NCBI GenBank assembly: GCA_964247055.1
Contig: OZ176051.1
Span: 12,400,001 to 12,464,000, forward strand
Reading direction: 5' to 3'
Origin: Paragordius varius
Lineage: Eukaryota > Animalia > Nematomorpha
Length of the DNA: 64,000 bases
Numbering within the stretch: the first letter of the stretch is position 1; every line of letters starts with the position of its first letter. Below, in pieces: positions 17,775-64,000 of this stretch. The notes below the pieces were generated by a model. The model was not told where the DNA came from. It saw only the letters and a program-made list of their open reading frames with translations, and ran no database searches. Made by a program: the position numbers and the translations under genes.

Positions 17775-18659
17775 ATGAAATTTTTTTTTATAATCTTAAA
17801 CACGATTTCAATTATAGGATTTCTTATTGTGATTATATATCTCGGTTTTCATTATAATGGAAAACTTTGGTGGACATCTAAAACATTTGTTTGCTACATA
17901 ATTTTTATAAGTTTGCATGTAATCAATTTCGTGACAAAGATATATGCAAAAACTATTCCACTTAATATATTAATATTTATTCGACAGACAATTTTGGTTC
18001 TTATGGCTATACCCAAATTCATCATTGTAAACGATGTAATGATGAAATGCATTTCGTTCAAGTCGAAGACATTTAGACGTATGCTCGGTTTACCACTTAT
18101 ACCATTGGCAATAGTTGTTTCCACAATAGTGGCCACATTTATACCACCAAAGATATTAAGTATTAAATATAAAAATTTACAAAATCCGATTCTCCAAATA
18201 ATCATTAGGACTCTTTTTCTTACACGTTTTGTATTATGTATCATTTCCGTTATAGCGTTATTATTAGCGGTCATTCTTTTGTTTAAAAAAAAGAGGGCCT
18301 TAAAAAGGGTAGGAAGCATGCCATTAACTAAAGACATTTTAACGAGAATGGAATCAATTCCACACATATCCACTATTAATGTCAAAGCAGGTCGCAATGA
18401 CAGAACAAATAATAATAATATATCGGCAATGACTAAAAATAGGATACAAAGATATCTCCATGCCAAAAAGGACACTACACTTTTGATAGTGTTATCCGTG
18501 GGCTATATAATGAATGCCGTTCTATATTTTTACCTTATTTTCATCTCTTTTAGTAGTAAAAATATAGTGTTATCATTACTATACAATCTGGATATTTTAT
18601 TTGCTATATTACTAGACCCCCAAAAGGAAAATTACGCTAGAAACTTTCAACGCCCATAA
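17775..18659 (+). CDS. Intronless orphan seven-transmembrane (GPCR-like) protein, 294 aa, paralog 2
   Basis: Aligns end to end with 982-1863 (roughly 70% identity by eye, with small in-frame indels). Upstream and downstream flanks are also homologous. Confidence 0.85.
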   Translation: MKFFFIILNTISIIGFLIVIIYLGFHYNGKLWWTSKTFVCYIIFISLHVINFVTKIYAKTIPLNILIFIRQTILVLMAIPKFIIVNDVMMKCISFKSKTFRRMLGLPLIPLAIVVSTIVATFIPPKILSIKYKNLQNPILQIIIRTLFLTRFVLCIISVIALLLAVILLFKKKRALKRVGSMPLTKDILTRMESIPHISTINVKAGRNDRTNNNNISAMTKNRIQRYLHAKKDTTLLIVLSVGYIMNAVLYFYLIFISFSSKNIVLSLLYNLDILFAILLDPQKENYARNFQRP

Positions 18660-40939: not shown

Positions 40940-42688
40940 CGAATTTTTATATCATTCTTTCCTTTAAAAGGGGACCAAAAATGAGTTACTTTTATGTCCC
41001 TTGATCCCAGCTGTGTGAACATAATTTTAAAATAAAACTTTTAACCATCATTTTGTAAAACGAAAATCTTATATTAAATCCAATGATAGTTGAATATTAA
41101 CTTTCAAAGGGACAATTTGAATTTGGTCAATTTCGAATAAACAATATTTGAGCCTATAAACTCGTAAAAGAATAATTAAAGACATTTTTTTATTTAATAT
41201 GTTATTCATTATTTTATCTCCATTACCTCTATTTATTGCAAATTGTTAAGATATCGGTGCTACATCACAGCGAAGCGTTACAGGGCAAGCTAGTGTGAAA
41301 TAAAAATAAGACAGGCATTGAATCAAATATAAGTCCATTATATTTACTTTTTCTATGTCATTGATCAATTTAGCTTTAACTCTTGATGCTAAAGGATGTA
41401 TAAACTTTTGGATTTCAGATGAAACATAGGATAAATTGTTAGGCGATTCAATGTTTCTCAGGTTTTCTCCCATTATTTGGTCAAACCGAGCTACAAGTTT
41501 TAGTAACGATAAGATTCTAGCATTTGGCGCTGAGTCATCCAGATACATTAAACTAACATGTCCTTGAAAAGGGAGATTTCGGTTGATAAGAAATTTCATG
41601 CAGGCCAATATTTGATGTGATAGGATCGATCAAAAAGTAGGCAACAATAACAATACGCAGATCTGTTCTTTGGTGAATATAAAAACCAAGACCTTTCAAC
41701 TTCAAATCCTTCTTTTTAACCGACACGTCGAAAAAACCAAATTGGGGCATTGAACGGATGATTTTTAGTTTCAAAGAATGGCATTTATTTTAATATATTT
41801 GAGGTCTACGAATAATCATTTTTGTGCGAAGCTGATTAGATATTACGGGTGGAAAATTATTATTAGAAAAAGGCGTCATCATTAAACTCTATAGATATAG
41901 CGCTTGGAATTACTAATGGTATATTTGTAGTTTTCTTATCTCTATATAGGAATAACTTGGGTTTCAGGTGCAGTAAAGTTTTATTGTTTGTATCGCATAC
42001 ACTTTTTCAATGTTATGGTCAGATATTTTCGTTAAATAAGATTTCATACTCATTCGCATTTTATTTGTTTTATTCTCTTCATGAATTTTTCGTTTCCTAT
42101 TTGCATAGCCGCTGAGTTTAGGCATTGATATCTGATGAATATGAAAGTAATAAAAAATACAAGGCTATATTAATAATATAAACCTACCCTGTTGGAGATG
42201 GAATGATCTTGTTAAAAAAATTAAATTGTTTTTTTAAATTGAATATGTATAAAATAAAAATGCAATTATAAATTATAAAATTAAGAGATAAAGTTTTGAA
42301 CAGAGCGAGAAGTTAAAATAATTAAATTAAAGGCAATAAAAGTATTAACAATATTTGCGTGATAAAGAAACGTTTTTTAAGCGAAAAAATAAGTTTTCAC
42401 ATCTTGAAGGGAATAATGAAAGTTGTTTTTTGCATAATGTTTGATCTTGATCTCATTTATATAATATTTATATTATTTTGGGGGTTACCTAAGTCGCTGA
42501 AAAATCTTACTTGAAAGTTGTTATTATTAGTGCATAATTTAAATTTAATTTTAAAAAAATCATGTAGGCGTCCCTAAATAACGGCGCCCGAGGCATGATG
42601 CACCCCCTTGCCCTACCCCCCTCCCCCTTGCCCTACCCCCCCCCCCCTTGCCCTACCCCCCCCCCCCCCCCCCATCGGTACGCCACTT
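40940..42688 (-). mobile_element. Truncated hAT-Tip100/ZMYM1-like (DUF4371-type) transposon
   Basis: Terminus (a)AGTGGCGTACC at 42688 followed by ggcaagggg repeats. Remnants: KFLINRNLPFQGH..ARILSLLKLVARFDQIMGENL..SYVSSEIQKFI..LASRVKAKLINDI, DVAPIS and IKGHKS. The other end is missing. Confidence 0.7.
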
Positions 42689-43368
42689 ACCAAATGAAAA
42701 AATAAAAAACAATATTTTTTATTTATATTTTGATGTAGAATTTTTTTACTGAATAAAATATCAATGTTTAGATTTTACTAGTTATTTAACTAGTAAATAA
42801 TTATAAAATTATTTTTATATAGTTTCAAAAAAAGTGTAAAAAGAAAAACGCCATCTTATGAAATGAGATTTTATAGAAACCCTATTTATATGATTTTAAG
42901 CTATTTATATATTGAAAATATCTCCTAAAATAATAATAAACCATAAAATTTCAACTTTTATCATTTTTTTTGAATTGTCCTTTATTATCCTTAATTTTCA
43001 CTTTTTGCCCGATTTCGATTTTTTTTCAACATTTTAAAAACTAGCTCGTAAACAAATAAAATTTTTACGGCAAATGAATACGCTGGTTATAAGTCTCATG
43101 AAAAAAAAAATTTAGAATTTTTTTGCAGACAATGTAATATATATATATATATAAATATATATTATTAAATTCTGAAAGTCCATCATGTATTTAATATCAA
43201 GTTAAATGATCCTTTGAGTTGGCTTCCAAACAATTATGAATGTATTAAAAGGTGTGAATGATTCACTATTTACATACCTATACGTATATAACGGGCTTCA
43301 AGTTTTTAAGGCATGGGTACACCAGGCATATTAGTAATATTAACGTATTTTTGATTTATATAAATTTA

Positions 43369-50009: not shown

Positions 50010-50332
50010 TATATAAAGGTTTAATTTTTTAACGATAATATAATCCAAAATTTTATTATTTCAATCTTCACTTATTATTCTCACCCCGTGAAAAAGTATA
50101 GTTTGATAATCATTACACAAATTTTTAAAAGGTTGCCGATTTTTATAAAAAATGTGTTTTAACCAAAGTTGGACTTTTTACTAATTGAATCGTAAGACCA
50201 TTAAATTTTTTTATCAAAGTCGGTCCAATATAAGTCCCAAAAATAAATGATGCTTAATTATTTTCTTATTAAAGAGTAAAACCCAAAAACTTAATATATT
50301 ATATGTATTTCTTTTTTTTGGTATATACACAG
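50010..50332 (+). promoter_or_regulatory. TATA box, non-coding exon and 5'-UTR intron of microprotein gene 1
   Basis: TATATAAAG at 50010; candidate donor aa|gtatag at 50096 (alternative gtaaga near 50192); acceptor tacacag| at 50332, 20 nt before the ATG. Confidence 0.5.
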
Positions 50333-50352
50333 CCAACAAAACAAAAAAAGTA

Positions 50353-50550
50353 ATGGATAAAGTTAATAATGCCATGGATAGAGCGGGTGACAGCATGAAA
50401 GCCGGTTGTGATAAGGTTAAAAGTGGTGTTCAAGGTATGCAAGACCAAATGCATAATGCAGGCGGGAAAATGCATCAAGCCCAAAATGAAATGCAATCTG
50501 GCGCGAATCAAATGGCCCAAGGTGCCGATCGAATGACCAAAATGAACTGA
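50353..50550 (+). CDS. Small Met-rich hydrophilic LEA3/hydrophilin-like protein, 65 aa (microprotein 1)
   Basis: GC-enriched ORF in an AT-rich background. No L/I/F/W/Y/P; 10 Met. Hydrophobic residues fall at 3/4 spacing (1,4,8,11,15,19,22,26,29,33...). Splice acceptor upstream; AATAAA ~220 nt downstream. Confidence 0.85.
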   Translation: MDKVNNAMDRAGDSMKAGCDKVKSGVQGMQDQMHNAGGKMHQAQNEMQSGANQMAQGADRMTKMN

Positions 50551-51766
50551 GGAATAAAACTTTTCAATTCTCATTTTTATCAATTATTAATTCATCTTTT
50601 CCATTTACAAAATTAATCTATCCCATTGTTAGCGTAGTATAATTAGCGCAGTTTTTTGGATATTGTAAAATGATGCATATTCATTAATGTATATGATTTG
50701 TACATGTGCAATGCATCGTCTTCTGTAAATTATTGTTGTTTTATAACTGCCCAAAAATCTTTTCCGAAATTAATAAATTAGTTGTAACTTATAAATATTA
50801 TTAAAACTATCAAAATAAAAACGATTTAAAGTTCACTAGTATGCGGAAACGAAACCCGCAGAAGTAAAAAATATGTTTTTTAGACGTATATTACTCTAAA
50901 GGTCTTAGACTAAAACAAAAACCCTTATTTATTTAAACATTTTTCGGAGAACTATTTATAATGTTCGAATAGAGATTCTTATTCCCACTTTTTCTTTGCC
51001 AAATGTATTTTTTATTAACTTCGAATGGCAAACAAAAAATATCGTCTCATTAAGTAAATTAATAAATAATTAAATATATTTTTTGCACAAATTTCATTTA
51101 TGATGATAAAAAGAATTATGATGTAAAATTCAAAGGTACCACGAATATAACCTGATTATATATATATATATATTCATATATTAAAATCTTGTATTTTAAG
51201 TCTTGGCGTGTTTTTTCAAAAGCTAATTTATAATATTTCATAAAAAAACCCAAAACCGGAGACATTATTAATTATAAACTTAAATCCTTAATCACGAAAA
51301 GTATATAATCATCTATAAAAAACGAAATAATTTTTATTAAATTCAAAGTATATAATTTGGAGTCATACATTTTCAAATGCAAAGATGTGCTCTTCTAAAA
51401 AAAGCAAAAAGAGCCGAAATCGCATGGTATTAAGCAGACAAAAGGAAAATGTAAAAACACATTTTATTTGGAAGATAAATGCTAAACACTTCAAATATTT
51501 TGGTTGAAAGATCCGTTGAAATCAAGTTTAACTAATAGATTAAAAAGGTTTTTATCAAAAACTGGCCGATTCTAACAAAGTTTAAAATTATATTATCATA
51601 AATATAGTTTATAACATATTTTTCAATATTAAGAAGAAACTATCTTTAATCGAAATAATTATAATTATCGGTATGAAATTTTTATATCTGAAGCTTACAA
51701 CATAAAATATACCCGAAACTAGTTTCACGTGTCAAATAAATGAATCCCATAAACTTGTAGATAATA

Positions 51767-52039
51767 CAGTAAAAACTGAAATTATACGGACAAAACGTAA
51801 AAATTTAAAGTCAAATATTTTTTCTAAAAGATAACCATACTTTTTAAATCTTGAACCTAAATATAACTCATTGTTTAAAATGATAAAATGTAAAATCCAA
51901 CACACTTAATTCTAATTTTACAATTGTAATTTAAATAGCTTATATGGGAAAAATTTAGGTTTAAAAAAGTATGGTTGTTTTTTCAATAAAAACATTCTTT
52001 ATATTTTTACTTTTTGTCCGTATAATTATATTTTTACTG
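51767..52039. mobile_element. pogo/Tigger-like MITE (TA TSD)
   Basis: TA|CAGTAAAAACTGAAATTATACGGACAAAA ... TTTTGTCCGTATAATTATATTTTTACTG|TA. Confidence 0.75.
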
Positions 52040-52164
52040 TAATTGTTATATTATATTCAAAATTTGAAATTTCGCATGACTTATAACCATTGGGGTTTTG
52101 TACCTTTTAAATTCATCCGACATTTAAAAATAAGCATAATAAATAGATTAAAAAAATAATATTA

Positions 52165-52362
52165 CAGTCATTTATGATTAGAATTGTCAAACATACGTTT
52201 TTAATTGTACTTTTTTTTTAATTGTTTACAATAAATAAATTATTATTTTATGGCTTCAAAATGCGCACGCTGAAAGTTGACATATCAAACATCATAACAA
52301 TTAATAACAAAAGTAAAATTTATTAAAAACATATGTTTGACAATTCTAAACATACATAACTG
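52165..52362. mobile_element. Tc1/mariner-type MITE (TA TSD)
   Basis: TA|CAGTCATTTATGATTAGAATTGTCAAACATA ... TATGTTTGACAATTCTAAACATACATAACTG|TA. Confidence 0.75.
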
Positions 52363-53824
52363 TATCTGAGATTTTATCTTGGATTTTTCTCGCCATATAT
52401 TACAAATGAATATTTTCTATGATTGCTCCCTCCCCCCGCCCGCCTGACCCCGTCATGTTGGGTTTTTTAATTAAATAAACGCTTATAAACTAATTATCAT
52501 CTTAATGCACTTTTTCGATTTTTAATTATGGTTTTAACCTTTTCGCTGTAATTTTCAAGTAGAGAGAAAATCCTCCACAAACTTACTAGTTTGTGATCTT
52601 CGTAAAACAAACATAAATTAATATTAAAACTTTTTTGCAATTTCATTTTTTGTTCACGAAGACATTTAGGGGTAGTTTTCTACCCTTAGAGTGATTAAAA
52701 TTGAAACCTGTTTCTCCTGTATTAAATTAAAATTCTTAGTATTTAATAGTTTAACTTGTAGCTAATATTAAAATCAATAATATCAGAATCTGGTAAATTT
52801 TAAATCTTTTCAAAGTTGTTTATTATATATTTAATTATAACCTACAATTATTTGCCACGATTTAAAAATAAATAAAAAAAATGGCGGCGAAAAAGTTTGA
52901 AATCAAGATTTTTTGTTGAAAAATTTTTGTATCTTGCGCCTTGATATTTTTATATTTAGCCCAATGCTAAAATTTATTTGAATATAAATGGCCCGAAGGT
53001 ATAAAACTACCCCCAAAGGTCATGAAGTGTTAAATTTTTAATTAACTATCTTAATATTATTTATTATATACTACCAATTATATTTAAGATTAATTTAATT
53101 GAGGATTGACTATAATCATTTTGGGAAAAAATTCACTAAAATTTAAATATTTATATAGGGATTTTAGGAGCTGTTTATATCTAGTAATGTAAAATTTAAA
53201 CGACAAATATGCAGATATATAATGCTCACAAGGTATGTTTTCTTATGAAAAGATACTGGTACTACAATCTCAATTTTGTTCAACTTTCTCTATTAAGATA
53301 AGAATATGGTTATACTTTTTCAATCCAATTTTACAACAACTCAATATACCAACACAAATACTTATTAAAAAAATTTGTACCATAAGTGTTAAAAATAAAA
53401 AAAGCTCAAAATTGACATCCTTTATCATATATTCAAAATTATAGGAAAAGAATAAATTTTACTAAAAAGGTATGATGTAAAAAGATATGAAATACGTCAA
53501 TATTTTGATTTTTTCACAATTATTTTTAATGAGCACCTTAAATTTGGCTTATAATATGAAAATATCTATAATAATTGCTTGGGGGTAGAAGCCATTTATA
53601 TACATTGGCCCCGAGTTATACAGCTATACCATAATTTGTCCAACCAATTATATATTTTATTGATTTTCGATTTAATTGATTGAATGCCACAGAAAGAATG
53701 GTAGTGCCAATTAATTAAATGTTAATTTACTTTGGGCAATGGCATAAAGCCTGCAATGACAAGGGATGATTTAACAATTAAAATATATGATATGGCAGGT
53801 AGAGAGAGGTAGGTAATTTTTAAT

Positions 53825-53978
53825 TATAAATAATTTTCCATTTTTAAGTTTATACTTACCTTACAATTCAAAACCAGGTAAAGTATTCGTTAAATATTGA
53901 TAAAATCTTTGTAAAAAAATAACAGCAGAAGTAAATATGTCCTTGAAATTTAATTTAATAATTCTATAATATTAACAG
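53825..53978 (+). promoter_or_regulatory. TATA box, short non-coding exon and 101-nt 5'-UTR intron of microprotein gene 2
   Basis: TATAAATA at 53825; strong donor CAG|gtaaagt at 53878; acceptor ttaacag| at 53978, 8 nt before the ATG. Confidence 0.65.
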
Positions 53979-53986
53979 ATAAAAGT

Positions 53987-54136
53987 ATGGAAAATACGAA
54001 GAAAGGTATGGAAAAAATGGCTGAAGGAATGAAGGCCGATGCCCACGAGGCCAAAGGCTATGCAAAAGGTGCCGCCGATCAGATGAAAAGTCAAGCCCAA
54101 AGCGCTGCAAACAATGCTAATAAAAATATGAAATAA
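53987..54136 (+). CDS. Small Ala/Met/Lys-rich LEA3/hydrophilin-like protein, 49 aa (microprotein 2; not in the ORF track)
   Basis: MENTKKGMEKMAEGMKADAHEAKGYAKGAADQMKSQAQSAANNANKNMK*. GC-enriched; gapless similarity to microprotein 1; spliced 5' UTR; AATAAA ~115 nt downstream. Confidence 0.85.
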   Translation: MENTKKGMEKMAEGMKADAHEAKGYAKGAADQMKSQAQSAANNANKNMK

Positions 54137-54594
54137 ATTTCTAAATTAACTCTCATATGCATCATATATTATCATCACATTATAATTTATGTTTATGCGA
54201 CGAAATTGTTGCTTAAAAATGTGTCAAATTACGCAAATTATTGATTGTTGAATAAATACATTACATAAAATATATTTAATGATTGATTAAATTACAGAGT
54301 ATAATTGCAATTAATGCTATTTCCGCAAATTGCAATTTTTATGCTAAGAATCATAAATCCAGATGCGTTTTTTCAATACTAGGCCTATTTTGTTAAATAA
54401 AGCATATCATTCTCAAGTGATCGTTCATTATATACAAATATTGTGTTGTCATGCTTATTAATCAATAAAAATAGGTCTCTCTTTTATATTGCATTGAAAA
54501 ACGGGGTATATGCGTTTTATCGCTTATCTTCGCCTTGCGCATATAACCCTTTTTGTTAACGTAGCATGAGTTGACATTTTACCACAAATAATAG

Positions 54595-54740
54595 TATATA
54601 AGACATGACCTAGGATCTATATTTAAAATATCACTTTTTCATTCACACTTTTTCATACACCACCAAGTATATTTTTCTTATTATCCGTTTGTTTTTAATT
54701 TATTGCGAGGAAAACTTATATTTAATTTGATCTACTATAG
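54595..54740 (+). promoter_or_regulatory. TATA box, non-coding exon and 74-nt 5'-UTR intron of microprotein gene 3
   Basis: TATATAAG at 54595; CA/pyrimidine-rich leader; donor aa|gtatat at 54667; acceptor actatag| at 54740, 21 nt before the ATG. Confidence 0.6.
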
Positions 54741-54761
54741 ACTCACTCACTCACAACACAA

Positions 54762-54962
54762 ATGGACTCCAACAAAGGTAAAATGGGACAAAGTGCCGGT
54801 CAACACGGAAGTGCCGGAGCTGGACATATGGGACAATCTGGCGGTATGGGTGGTGCCGGCCAACACGGTGGTATGGGCGCAGGAATGCAAAACAAAGGAG
54901 GAAATTGCGATAGTGGAAAATGCCAAGATTCTGCCCACCAACACGGACAAAGCAAAAACTAA
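54762..54962 (+). CDS. Small Gly/Gln/His/Met-rich hydrophilin-like protein, 66 aa (microprotein 3)
   Basis: 20 Gly in 66 aa; repeated MGQS.G / GQHG motifs; only 10 amino-acid types; strongly GC-enriched; acceptor upstream and AATAAA-like signals downstream. Confidence 0.85.
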   Translation: MDSNKGKMGQSAGQHGSAGAGHMGQSGGMGGAGQHGGMGAGMQNKGGNCDSGKCQDSAHQHGQSKN

Positions 54963-56031
54963 AACACCCTTTTCAAACATTAAATTAACTTTATCGTAGT
55001 TTTACATAACAACACCCAATGTACACCACACATTTTATTAACGCAAAATAAATAATGCATTAATGTCAAAAATGATTGTAATAAATCGTAAATTGTATTT
55101 TATTATACGCTATATACAGCCTTTGTCTGAAAAATAGTTATAAAATTTGATGTTCAAAGAAAAAAGTATTCATTAAGGGTCACATTAATAATGTAGAGAA
55201 ACGATTTATTTTGACACTAAAGCCAAGTATATTAGTCAACAAGTGATAACTTAAAATTGCGACCTTTAAAAAATCCTATATCTGTTCCGTCAAAAAACCA
55301 TTTTTTAGTCCATTTAAATAATGCAATTTAATCGACATAAACCGAAATAGACCAGAAGACATAGATAAAAGTCATTTTATTACATTCTCACAGTAGATCT
55401 AATTTAAAACATCTAAAAGTTGCTTTGATGGGGAATTCTTCCGCATCTACCCACTATTAACCTGTTGACATCTGACATATTACCTCTTGACATCAGTGGG
55501 GGACTCTCGCAAATAATTTTAAAGACGTTAAAAATCGATTTAGGAATTAATAATTATGGGCAAAAAAGATAATCATTTGTCAGTTATGGATGGACATTTA
55601 TATATATTTCCAGAGAGATGGTTCAAAAGCTAATATGTTTTTAAACAAAAACCGGCTAAAATCTCAAATTACACACCTGGTAACAATTTATATTAATATT
55701 ATAAATTTATATAAGAATCAATTATATTCTAACACCGATTGGCTAATATAAAAATCAAATACTAATGGTATATGGAAATATATATATATAATGTGGTGTA
55801 TAAAAATGAGTATACAAACGATTAATTGTAAAATATGTTTTCAGTTAATATATAACATCTTGCCCAGCCAGTAAAATATGAAAATATAATTACGATTCTA
55901 AGAAGTTTACATGTATAAATTATAAACATATAATAATAATATAATTAATACTAATGATAAAATATGCGATAATACTCTATAAATAAATATACGATTTTTC
56001 TGTAATGAGATATATCTCAAAAAACTCTTAT

Positions 56032-62000: not shown

Positions 62001-62611
62001 AATTACTTATATTTATTTGCATTTTTAAAAAATATTGTCAAAAATTAAGATAAAACCATAAAGATATATATATTTTATATTAATAATAAGTTATATGAGC
62101 CCGAAAACGCATAATTTATTTTTAGGGTGAATTTGAATTGTAAATGGTATATTTCTAATAAATGTTCAGTATATGCGTTTTAATTTAAAAGTATCCTCAT
62201 CATTAAGTAATATCGTATGTGCAAACATTTGAAACATAAATTGTTTAAATGTTTAATCATTATTATCATGGAGTAACAATAATACTGCTGATAAAATTAA
62301 CATACTTTTTTCATAAATTTCGCTCTAAGTAAGCGTTTTAAACTACAATGCATTATCTTTGTTTTATATCAAATTAATGTCCCATATTTTTTTTGTATGA
62401 AATTTAGGATACTCTCTTTCTTAATTAAAATAAAATTTTAAATAACACATATACTCACCTCTGGACATAGTGTCATATTAATAACGTGGGCGCCCCACCA
62501 ATTGTACATTTTGCTTTCGGCCCGAGTCGAATACCGCGGCCCATCTATCGTTATAGCTGTTCCTTTGGAATGGAATGAAAATTCCAATTCTTTAGCGCAT
62601 TGTTTGAAAAC
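56032..62611 (-). CDS. MTAP: S-methyl-5'-thioadenosine phosphorylase, 3' part (5' exons beyond the window)
   Basis: Phase-0 exons: 62611-62459 (VFKQCAKE..KGTAITIDGPRYSTRAESKMY..WGAHVINMTLCPE), 59594-59508 (VCLAREAGMGYAAIGMITDYDSF..EA), 58971-58849 (VSVGMVLETVK..DWTENIKHNE) and a probable last exon 56160-56032. The GPRxSTRAES and TDYD motifs are diagnostic. Confidence 0.93.
56665..57245. mobile_element. MITE family D, copy 2 (MTAP intron)
   Basis: TA|CCATTTGCACTTCAAGAGTGTC ... GACACTCTTGAAGTGCAAATGG|TA with 21-bp subterminal arrays (about 6-7 left, 2-3 right). Confidence 0.85.
58459..58817. mobile_element. Tandem dimer of a ~175-bp Tc1/mariner-type MITE (MTAP intron)
   Basis: Units 58459-58629 and 58639-58817 are each self-complementary (cagt(a/g)tgc..taatggttg ... 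caaccattaaaatgcacactg) and share the core ggaaataattg(c/t)ttatgcaacattttgtcg. Confidence 0.75.
59742..61757 (+). mobile_element. Chapaev3 (CMC)-like transposon G with ~520-bp TIRs and a transposase N-terminal remnant (MTAP intron)
   Basis: TAA|CACTGTGCGC ... GCGCACTGTG|TAA (3-bp TSD). Arms 59742-~60260 and ~61225-61757 are reverse complements. The internal LCYICG..ITEQIISHYNMYFAGKL..*AHSKV resembles the FCYICG...YFG.KLGDQDKSWAPH N-terminus as I recall it for Chapaev3 transposases. Confidence 0.75.
61950..62147. mobile_element. MITE family E, copy 2 (MTAP intron)
   Basis: TA|CCATTTACACTTCAAATTCACCC ... GGGTGAATTTGAATTGTAAATGG|TA; a shorter derivative of 25933-26247. Confidence 0.8.
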
Positions 62612-64000
62612 CTGATAAGTTTAATTTAAAATATAAATAAACGTAAATAATAATAAATGCCACCATATTTACACTCTAAAACGTTTTGATTTTAACATAT
62701 ACCCTAAATGATTGTAATTGTGAAGTGTGATTAAGAGTGTAATCAATTTTTATCCCTATTAATCTTTTCACAACCTAAAACCATTGGTTACATTTAAATA
62801 AAAATTTATAATTACCTATAAGAAAACATTTTATTTTTATTATTACAATTTTTACTGTGTCTGTTTATGATATATTAGTCTGTCATATTTAGGAATAACT
62901 TAGTTTTTAGAAACAAGCGCATAGAGCCGGCCCTCAGAAAATAATTTATGACTTCAAACCAAGTTTTTAAGGATGTTATTAAAACATAAAATATGAATTT
63001 TTATCGACTACTAAATAATTTGGAAAATTACCTTATTATTATAAAAAACTGAGATATAAATTCCCTGCATTAAAAGATATAAATACAGTAGATAGTGTCA
63101 TGCATTAGCTTTCAGAATATAAACTTGGAGACGCCATATAAGACAGATAAATATCAAAAAAATTTGGTAAACGTTATTCGGTTAAAAAATATATACTGAC
63201 ATTTATTAATTTTTTATAGCATGTAGTGAGATGGTTAAATTTTTTTATAGTATATTATTATATATAGGCAAGGGAGAATCAAATAACAACAGATTAATAT
63301 TATGTCATAAATATGAGAAAATTATTATAATGCAAAAATTATATATATATCAAATCAAATTTGTGTTAATTTAATTATGATACACGTTAATTTTTTTAGC
63401 AAAAAATATGGGCCTAATTTCATTTAAAAGCTTTGAAATTAATTTTATTTTGACAATGCCAGCCAAAGTAATTTTAATTTTAAATTAGTTTTTTGTTAAA
63501 CTAATGTCAAACAAATTCAAGATTTTCCAAAAAATTAACCCTACAAAAATAATCTGTCAAATACTTAAATCAACAAATGAAAGCAGGTCTCATCCTCCCA
63601 ACTTTAAAACATTATAATTCCATTCTGAATATTATATATAACTGATATAAGCAATTTTAATTGGCGTAATAATAAGAAAGGTTCAAAGCTAGTCGGATTA
63701 TTGAAAAAAAAGTGTCACAATTTTGTGTAAATATTTTTTTTATATTTTCAGTTTAATTCTGTCAAATTTTATTTTTTTTATTCCATAGAGAGTTTATATG
63801 TTCGATTCTGTAAATTTACCATATTATCACGTTAAAATTATATCTTATCTCAATAAAAAGGCTAATGCATCCATTAAAGTTTTAATAATTTAAATATTTT
63901 ATACTTAAGGCGTTATTATTCAGATGGTTAACTAAATTTTGACATGCCTTTATTGTATAAAATAGTAAATTTTGATTAAATGGCGAATTTTTTTAAAGCT

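Follow-up and report, generated by a model that had tools for sequence, protein, structure and literature searches.

The 64,000-nucleotide stretch analysed here, hereafter the window, corresponds to G000:C2:12,400,001-12,464,000 of an assembly of 110.6 Mb in 44 contigs, and is AT-rich eukaryotic DNA with a GC content of 27.6%. It carries a cluster of three short open reading frames (ORFs) on the plus strand, two of which belong to one small protein family while the third is a neighbour of similar composition. As the original prediction had it, they encode 65, 49 and 66 residues, and the coding sequence of each is contained in one exon:

50353..50550, plus strand: ORF1, coding sequence including the stop codon; 65 residues, with 15% Met and 12% Gly; member of a three-gene family.
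53987..54136, plus strand: ORF2, coding sequence including the stop codon; 49 residues; paralogue of ORF1 and of a 48-residue gene at G000:C2:4067343-4067486.
54762..54962, plus strand: ORF3, coding sequence including the stop codon; 66 residues, with 30% Gly, 8 Gln, 6 Met, 5 His and 2 Cys; predicted to be disordered.

ORF1 and ORF2 are separated by 3.4 kb and ORF2 and ORF3 by 626 nt, and the predicted masses of the three proteins range from 5.2 to 7.0 kDa. Leu, Ile, Phe, Trp and Pro are completely absent from all three, which is true of no other frame among the 217 ATG-initiated ORFs of at least 30 residues in the window (83 of them of at least 45 residues). The median content of these five residues is 34% in the ORFs of at least 45 residues, and the next lowest value is 16%, or 14% when the ORFs of at least 30 residues are considered. 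The claim that this bias exceeds chance is therefore upheld. The same holds for the description of the genes as GC-rich islands, since 150-nt islands of elevated GC content coincide with ORF1, ORF2 and ORF3, whose GC content (0.43-0.51) is the highest among those ORFs against 0.24-0.28 in the flanks. The N-termini are hydrophilic in all three proteins and, as judged by reading the sequence, none bears the hydrophobic segment of a signal peptide, in agreement with the earlier view.

The case for ORF1 and ORF2 as genes is built on paralogy. A distant paralogue, the 48-residue ORF listed above, is found on the same chromosome and strand at a distance of 8.4 Mb, and the three proteins align without gaps from Met1 onward, so that both length and start are conserved. 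They share the N-terminal pattern M-[DE]-x5-M ... K-A ... K-G ... G-x2-D-Q. To control for composition, N-anchored gapless BLOSUM62 scores were compared with those of 20,000 residue shuffles: the observed score was reached by 3 of the 20,000 shuffles for ORF1 and ORF2, by a single one for ORF1 and the distant paralogue, and by none for ORF2 and the distant paralogue. ORF1 and ORF2 also find each other by BLASTP (E = 7e-4), and a profile made from the three members and run against the whole genome returned exactly three loci, namely ORF1, ORF2 and the distant paralogue. The chromosome that carries them, of 15,197,084 bp, has CCCTAA and TTAGGG repeats at its opposite ends, the canonical metazoan telomere repeat, and is thus assembled from telomere to telomere.

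The way in which the copies have diverged is equally informative. Between ORF2 and the distant paralogue, nucleotide identity is 0.60, 0.69 and 0.29 at codon positions 1, 2 and 3, respectively, and the same codon is used at 10 of the 21 identical residues; together these values point to purifying selection on the protein after an old duplication. ORF1, ORF2 and the distant paralogue are thus under protein-level selection and, judged from these alignments, ORF1 and ORF2 arose long ago by tandem duplication within a lineage-restricted family that has only one other member in the genome. GC content by codon position in the sense frames is 0.57/0.35/0.40 for ORF1 and 0.51/0.37/0.43 for ORF2, akin to the 0.52/0.35/0.36 of the genome's HSP70, and 0.64/0.53/0.38 for ORF3. 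A purine at position -3 combined with a G at +4 is found in all four genes (ORF1 to ORF3 and the distant paralogue), compared with 12% of the 1,125 plus-strand ATGs of the window. Log-odds of synonymous codons against HSP70 usage were positive for the ORFs and higher for antisense frames, and were not used as evidence.

The same data bear on the reading in which some or all of these ORFs are not translated and would represent chance frames in GC-rich non-coding islands, gene fragments or pseudogenes. Such a reading could appeal to the exact look-up in a collection of 15 billion proteins, in which none of the four small proteins is present, to the several alternative frames, antisense ones included, that are open across each island, to ORF3, for which no relative was found in the searches made, and to the TATA and polyadenylation motifs, which occur at chance level (see below). 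It fares poorly against a three-way paralogy that exceeds composition, against the concentration of the divergence between ORF2 and its distant paralogue at codon position 3, against the conserved length and start of ORF1, ORF2 and this paralogue and the strong start context in four genes out of four, and against the fact that five common residues are missing altogether from 180 codons, which is unexpected in chance ORFs. We consider it highly improbable for the cluster as a whole, and less so for ORF3. ORF1 and ORF2 are very probably real coding genes, and ORF3 is probably one as well. The claim that standard annotation would overlook such genes is supported to the extent that they are very probably real and of a kind that it could miss.

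The three genes had been presented as alike, a view that was not borne out. ORF3 does not resemble either of the others in sequence (z = 0.3 in the shuffle test; E > 10 in pairwise search), although it opens with the residues M-D-x2-K-x2-M that are shared by ORF2 and the distant paralogue. It has no paralogue in the genome, and no homologue was found in the word-index search, the ESM Atlas or the metagenome scan. AlphaFold2 predicted no secondary structure for it (predicted local distance difference test, pLDDT, of 55.8). Being unrelated in sequence and structurally different from ORF1 and ORF2, ORF3 makes the locus a tandem pair with a compositionally similar neighbour and not a set of three copies. 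The notion of a protectant "system", with co-regulation and induction by stress, is likewise unsupported; two paralogues clustered with such a neighbour are suggestive only.

The upstream and downstream regions of the three genes hold a number of candidate signals, which are listed here by position:

50330..50332, plus strand: CAG resembling a splice acceptor, preceded by a T-rich tract and separated from the ORF1 ATG by 20 nt; putative acceptor of a cis-spliced intron in the 5' untranslated region (5' UTR) or of trans-splicing.
53976..53978, plus strand: putative acceptor (CAG), separated from the ORF2 ATG by 8 nt.
54738..54740, plus strand: putative acceptor (TAG), separated from the ORF3 ATG by 21 nt.
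50040..50095, plus strand: candidate non-coding first exon of ORF1 (model); G-poor, with a GTATAG donor at 50096 and TATATAA at 50010.
50144 and 50192, plus strand: alternative ORF1 model, with TATAAAA at the first position and a GTAAGA donor at the second.
53853..53877, plus strand: candidate non-coding first exon of ORF2 (model); G-poor, ending in CCAG, with a GTAAAG donor at 53878 and TATAAAT at 53825; implied intron of 101 nt.
54630..54666, plus strand: candidate non-coding first exon of ORF3 (model); CA/CT-rich, ending in CCAA, with a GTATAT donor at 54667 and TATATAA at 54595; implied intron of 74 nt.
54251..54256, plus strand: first AATAAA after the ORF2 stop codon, at offset +115; a hexamer frequent by chance.
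50553, 50772, 54979 and 55047, plus strand: other polyadenylation hexamers, equally frequent by chance, namely AATAAA at the first two positions (ORF1), ATTAAA at 54979 and AATAAA at 55047 (ORF3).

The original prediction attributed an identical architecture to the three genes, and only part of it stands out from the background. A YAG trinucleotide ends 8-21 nt before the ATG in ORF1 to ORF3 and 11 nt before that of the distant paralogue; such a YAG precedes 28% of the 1,125 plus-strand ATGs of the window, which makes its presence in four genes out of four mildly significant. By contrast, 64% of random ATGs have TATAWAW upstream and 49% of 130-nt windows contain a polyadenylation hexamer, so that the TATA and polyadenylation motifs, being at chance frequency in this genome, carry no information. 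The shared architecture is therefore a reading of the sequence and not an observation. The candidate first exons are G-poor and CA/CT-rich, end in CCAA or CCAG followed by GTA, and imply introns of 74 to 237 nt; that of ORF3 resembles the 21-nt leader following the acceptor, both being CA/CT-rich. Similarly weak, AT-rich donors (GTATGT, GTATTT, GTTTAT) are found in HSP70 introns of the same genome. A short non-coding exon followed by a 5' UTR intron is thus a plausible model for each gene, and the acceptor-like sites could belong to cis-spliced introns or, equally, be sites of trans-splicing. Regarding the latter, the rotifer spliced leader (PMC3795323) is absent from the genome at up to 2 mismatches; a 31-nt segment of the Hormiphora californensis spliced leader is absent too. 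In one HSP70 gene of the genome, a TATA box is present and the ATG is not preceded by an acceptor. No upstream motif beyond AT-rich words was found to be shared by the genes of the cluster.

Some features of the HSP70 family in this genome deserve mention in their own right. Two of its genes, L012 (G000:C4:12482100-12482620) and L013 (G000:C6:5388072-5389224), contain ultra-short introns: one of 23 nt interrupts the GIDLGTTYSCVGV motif within its Cys codon, and a second, about 28 nt long, is close by. Beside them are introns of ordinary size (66-165 nt), whose donors are weak and AT-rich.

Comparison with known families yielded sub-threshold leads at best. Neither Pfam nor NCBIfam returned anything above cutoff for the proteins of the cluster, and the searches for LEA_4 and CsbD, suggested along with the LEA-like reading, gave no Pfam match to either. 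The closest lead concerns the distant paralogue, whose residues 1-40 align with positions 1-40 of the LEA_1 model (PF03760) at 23.0 bits (E = 1.3e-4) for a gathering cutoff of 25; at genome scale the same comparison gives 20.5 bits (E = 0.075). ORF2, and ORF2 only, resembles YtxH (PF12732) at 13.3 bits for a cutoff of 37.5, and the NCBIfam stress family sll1863 scores 13.1 bits for a cutoff of 35. The family profile, searched against 1.84 billion representative proteins, retrieved a single and borderline match, a protein of the bdelloid rotifer Rotaria sordida (E = 7.5e-4). As LEA_1, YtxH and the rotifer protein all represent stress or hydrophilic families, these leads are counted in favour of a protectant role. 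Word-index searches returned nothing for ORF1, for ORF3 or for the family alignment; the ESM Atlas gave for ORF1 only leads below 0.9, consisting of bacterial hypothetical proteins and a YtxH-like cluster; and the sequence search of the PDB gave only chance matches to beta-lactamases. No similarity to the tardigrade CAHS, SAHS or MAHS proteins emerged from the family profile search or the word searches, ORF3 having been covered by word search, Atlas and metagenome scan only. Taken together, these results agree with the lineage-specific character proposed earlier, the word-index searches being empty and the profile search yielding its one borderline match. The family is apparently a lineage-restricted orphan, hydrophilin by composition and, on sequence comparison, part of no demonstrable LEA family.

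Met makes up 15% of ORF1, 12% of ORF2, 9% of ORF3 and 10% of the distant paralogue. The Met residues of ORF1, at positions 1, 8, 15, 29, 33, 40, 47, 54 and 61, follow a heptad spacing and fall on one face of a helix, with Ala or Gly at the neighbouring position of the stripe. Over the whole length of ORF1 and ORF2 the hydrophobic moment peaks at 100 degrees, a value reached by none of 500 shuffles for ORF1 and by one of 500 for ORF2. The periodicity peak of ORF1 lies at 100-102 degrees (3.5-3.6 residues), and the angle of an 11/3 repeat (98 degrees) scores 0.86 vs 1.32 for the peak; in ORF2 the 11/3 angle scores about as high as the peak itself. AlphaFold2 run without an alignment models ORF1 as a single helix spanning residues 2-63 with a mean pLDDT of 94.6, although such a high single-sequence confidence for a lone helix is no evidence of a fold in solution. 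Foldseek found no match for this helix, as expected of a lone helix. ORF1 and ORF2 are accordingly predicted by these models to form an LEA-like amphipathic helix.

A helix of this kind invites a reading unrelated to stress, in which the proteins would be structural or regulatory microproteins, that is, coiled-coil subunits or modulators whose Met/Ala stripe packs against a partner or against itself, the cluster resulting from a tandem duplication next to an unrelated gene. The heptad-like apolar spacing of ORF1, with Met at 'a' and Ala or Gly at 'd/e', is in keeping with this, as are the very confident single helix of AlphaFold2 and the N-terminal motif kept across ancient paralogues, which is what a specific interaction would be expected to maintain. 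Weak similarities to helical bundles and hairpins point the same way (WXG100, E = 0.034; segments of ZorA and MakA, E = 0.008-0.03), but all these matches are far below the family cutoffs and Foldseek returned nothing. Moreover, the apolar stripe is very weak and lacks Leu, Ile and Phe, which is unusual for stable coiled coils, and a Gly content of 8-12% is unfavourable to a constitutive helix. We regard this explanation as rather unlikely.

The abundance of Met suggests another role, that of redox or metal buffer. The exposed Met residues of ORF1 and ORF2 would then serve as sacrificial targets of oxidation, to be restored by methionine sulfoxide reductase (Msr), and ORF3, whose 66 residues include 5 His, 6 Met and 2 Cys, would bind Cu, Zn or Ni. 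The Met content of all three proteins and the alignment of these residues along one face of ORF1 favour this role, for which a precedent exists in the bacterial MrpX, a small hypochlorite scavenger in which Met accounts for 20% and charged residues for 44% of the sequence and which an Msr regenerates (PMC4436054). On the other hand, the cluster proteins carry no signal peptide, and no frame resembling an Msr was seen among the open frames at 36-64 kb, no dedicated model search having been made. The Met residues also sit in the apolar stripe, where they have a structural role, and they are not strictly conserved, as the distant paralogue has less Met than ORF1 or ORF2 and one Met replaced by Ile. 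We therefore hold a buffer function to be unlikely.

The reading that we favour, at a probability of roughly 40%, takes the three genes to be independent and holds that ORF1/ORF2-type proteins act as small cytosolic protectants of the hydrophilin type. They would be largely unfolded in dilute solution and would fold into an amphipathic helix upon water loss, upon crowding, or upon contact with membranes or partly unfolded proteins. The helix of the family would be continuous and about 9 nm long, and its narrow apolar stripe would consist of Met, Ala, Val and Gly. The flexible Met face could provide a promiscuous, weakly hydrophobic contact surface, and the surface Met residues could also take up oxidants. 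Both ideas have counterparts elsewhere, as Met-rich amphipathic helices mediate promiscuous client binding in SRP54 (its 'methionine bristles') and in Hsp21, and surface Met can serve as an oxidant sink. A protectant function is plausible; any such activity is inferred, as are expression and the 5' UTR splicing model.

Composition is the link between these proteins and the hydrophilins, a class defined operationally by a Gly content above 6% and a mean hydrophilicity index above 1, taken here as a Kyte-Doolittle grand average of hydropathy (GRAVY) below -1. ORF1, ORF2, ORF3 and the distant paralogue all lie within both limits, with 12.3, 8.2, 30.3 and 8.3% Gly and GRAVY values of -1.08, -1.25, -1.13 and -1.26, respectively, but the class is a compositional one and membership in it says little about function. 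This and several other points weigh against a protectant role, including the caveat attached above to the confidence of the ORF1 helix. ORF1 and ORF2, like ORF3, show no match to LEA_1 at E values up to 10, and the LEA, CsbD and YtxH models all score below cutoff. No heat-shock elements were found upstream of any of the four genes, a result that says little given that the strict pattern used missed the HSP70 promoter control too. As for ORF3, its status as a gene comes down to composition, start context, position-specific GC content and position in the cluster, and it is overlapped by several further open frames; since open frames also lie over ORF1, where the frame is fixed by paralogy, these additional frames are an expected by-product of composition. 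The earlier description of the proteins as LEA/hydrophilin-like therefore holds for their hydrophilin composition and for the LEA-like helix predicted for ORF1 and ORF2, and does not extend to any LEA, CsbD or YtxH family cutoff.

A bolder version of the protectant reading can be formulated, in which ORF1, ORF2 and the distant paralogue would constitute a hitherto unseen animal family of 'methionine-bristle' helical microproteins, remote kin of both the N-terminal domain of the plant LEA_1 proteins and the hydrophilic repeat proteins of anhydrobiotic bdelloids, acting as combined molecular shield and oxidant sink, with ORF3 as a functionally linked disordered partner in one stress-induced locus. 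We deem it quite improbable.

If expressed, these proteins would be among the smallest hydrophilin-type proteins of animals, below common ORF cutoffs. ORF1 represents a near-minimal natural design consisting of one helix and a Met stripe, is easily synthesised, and could be used to probe the protection of proteins and membranes by a weakly hydrophobic, flexible face as well as the antioxidant contribution of Met. For genome annotation, the locus illustrates how composition and paralogy can together rescue real microprotein genes in AT-rich genomes.

Other features of the window are noted for completeness. The spacer between ORF1 and ORF2 holds two palindromic elements (51772-52035 and 52163-52364), each spanning 200-265 nt, with arms of 39+38 nt and 43 nt at 87-91% complementarity and the look of miniature inverted-repeat transposable elements. 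The sharpest GC island of the window, at 42476-42776, reaches up to 62% GC, and one of its frames has a Pro-rich, low-complexity translation. At 62441-62620 on the minus strand, an open frame contains the hallmark motif of methylthioadenosine phosphorylase (MTAP) or purine nucleoside phosphorylase (…GPRYSTRAES…WGA.VINMT…) and is probably one exon of a minus-strand MTAP-like gene. Two paralogous intronless ORFs of 293-294 residues on the plus strand (982-1863 and 17775-18659) encode multi-pass hydrophobic proteins that match no Pfam family and have no exact counterpart in the collection of 15 billion proteins. The arthropod R&R cuticle domain and the nematode Col_cuticle_N domain were searched for and neither was found.

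Among known systems, the hydrophilins offer the broadest parallel. The operational class is that of Garay-Arroyo et al. 2000, taking in LEA proteins as well as Sip18, Stf2 and Hsp12 of yeast. Like them, the four proteins described here are small, cytosolic and devoid of large aliphatic and aromatic residues, and are predicted to pass from disorder to helix (ORF1 and ORF2) or to be disordered (ORF3); unlike most of them, they are shorter (48-66 residues) and unusually rich in Met. LEA_1 (group 4, or D-113) is known as a plant family; over its first 40 residues the distant paralogue is co-linear with the LEA_1 domain from Met1 and likewise has a predicted amphipathic helix, whereas the score remains below cutoff and the cluster proteins are half the length of the plant proteins that bear the domain. 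LEA_4 (PF02987, group 3) is the LEA type of nematodes, rotifers, chironomids and Artemia. The proteins of the locus resemble it by an amphipathic helix with a narrow apolar stripe and a richness in Ala, Lys, Gln, Asp and Gly, and differ from it by the absence of tandem 11-mer repeats and of a Pfam match and by the 7-residue spacing of Met.

The rotifer match, CAF0852798.1 of Rotaria sordida (A0A813WBF2, 171 residues), is an uncharacterised hydrophilic protein with weak similarity to Dehydrin and Hsp12. It shares with ORF1 a K-x-G-x-D-K-V-K motif and an 'MDK' start, and pairwise comparison gives E values of 9e-6 to 7e-5. Unlike ORF1, it is built of tandem 11-mer repeats, is 2.6 times longer and has Phe and Leu in its stripe, and the match could reflect convergence of low-complexity sequences. 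Finally, MrpX, which differs from the cluster proteins by its periplasmic location, signal peptide and reductase operon and shows no sequence similarity to them, is like them small and composed largely of Met and polar or charged residues.

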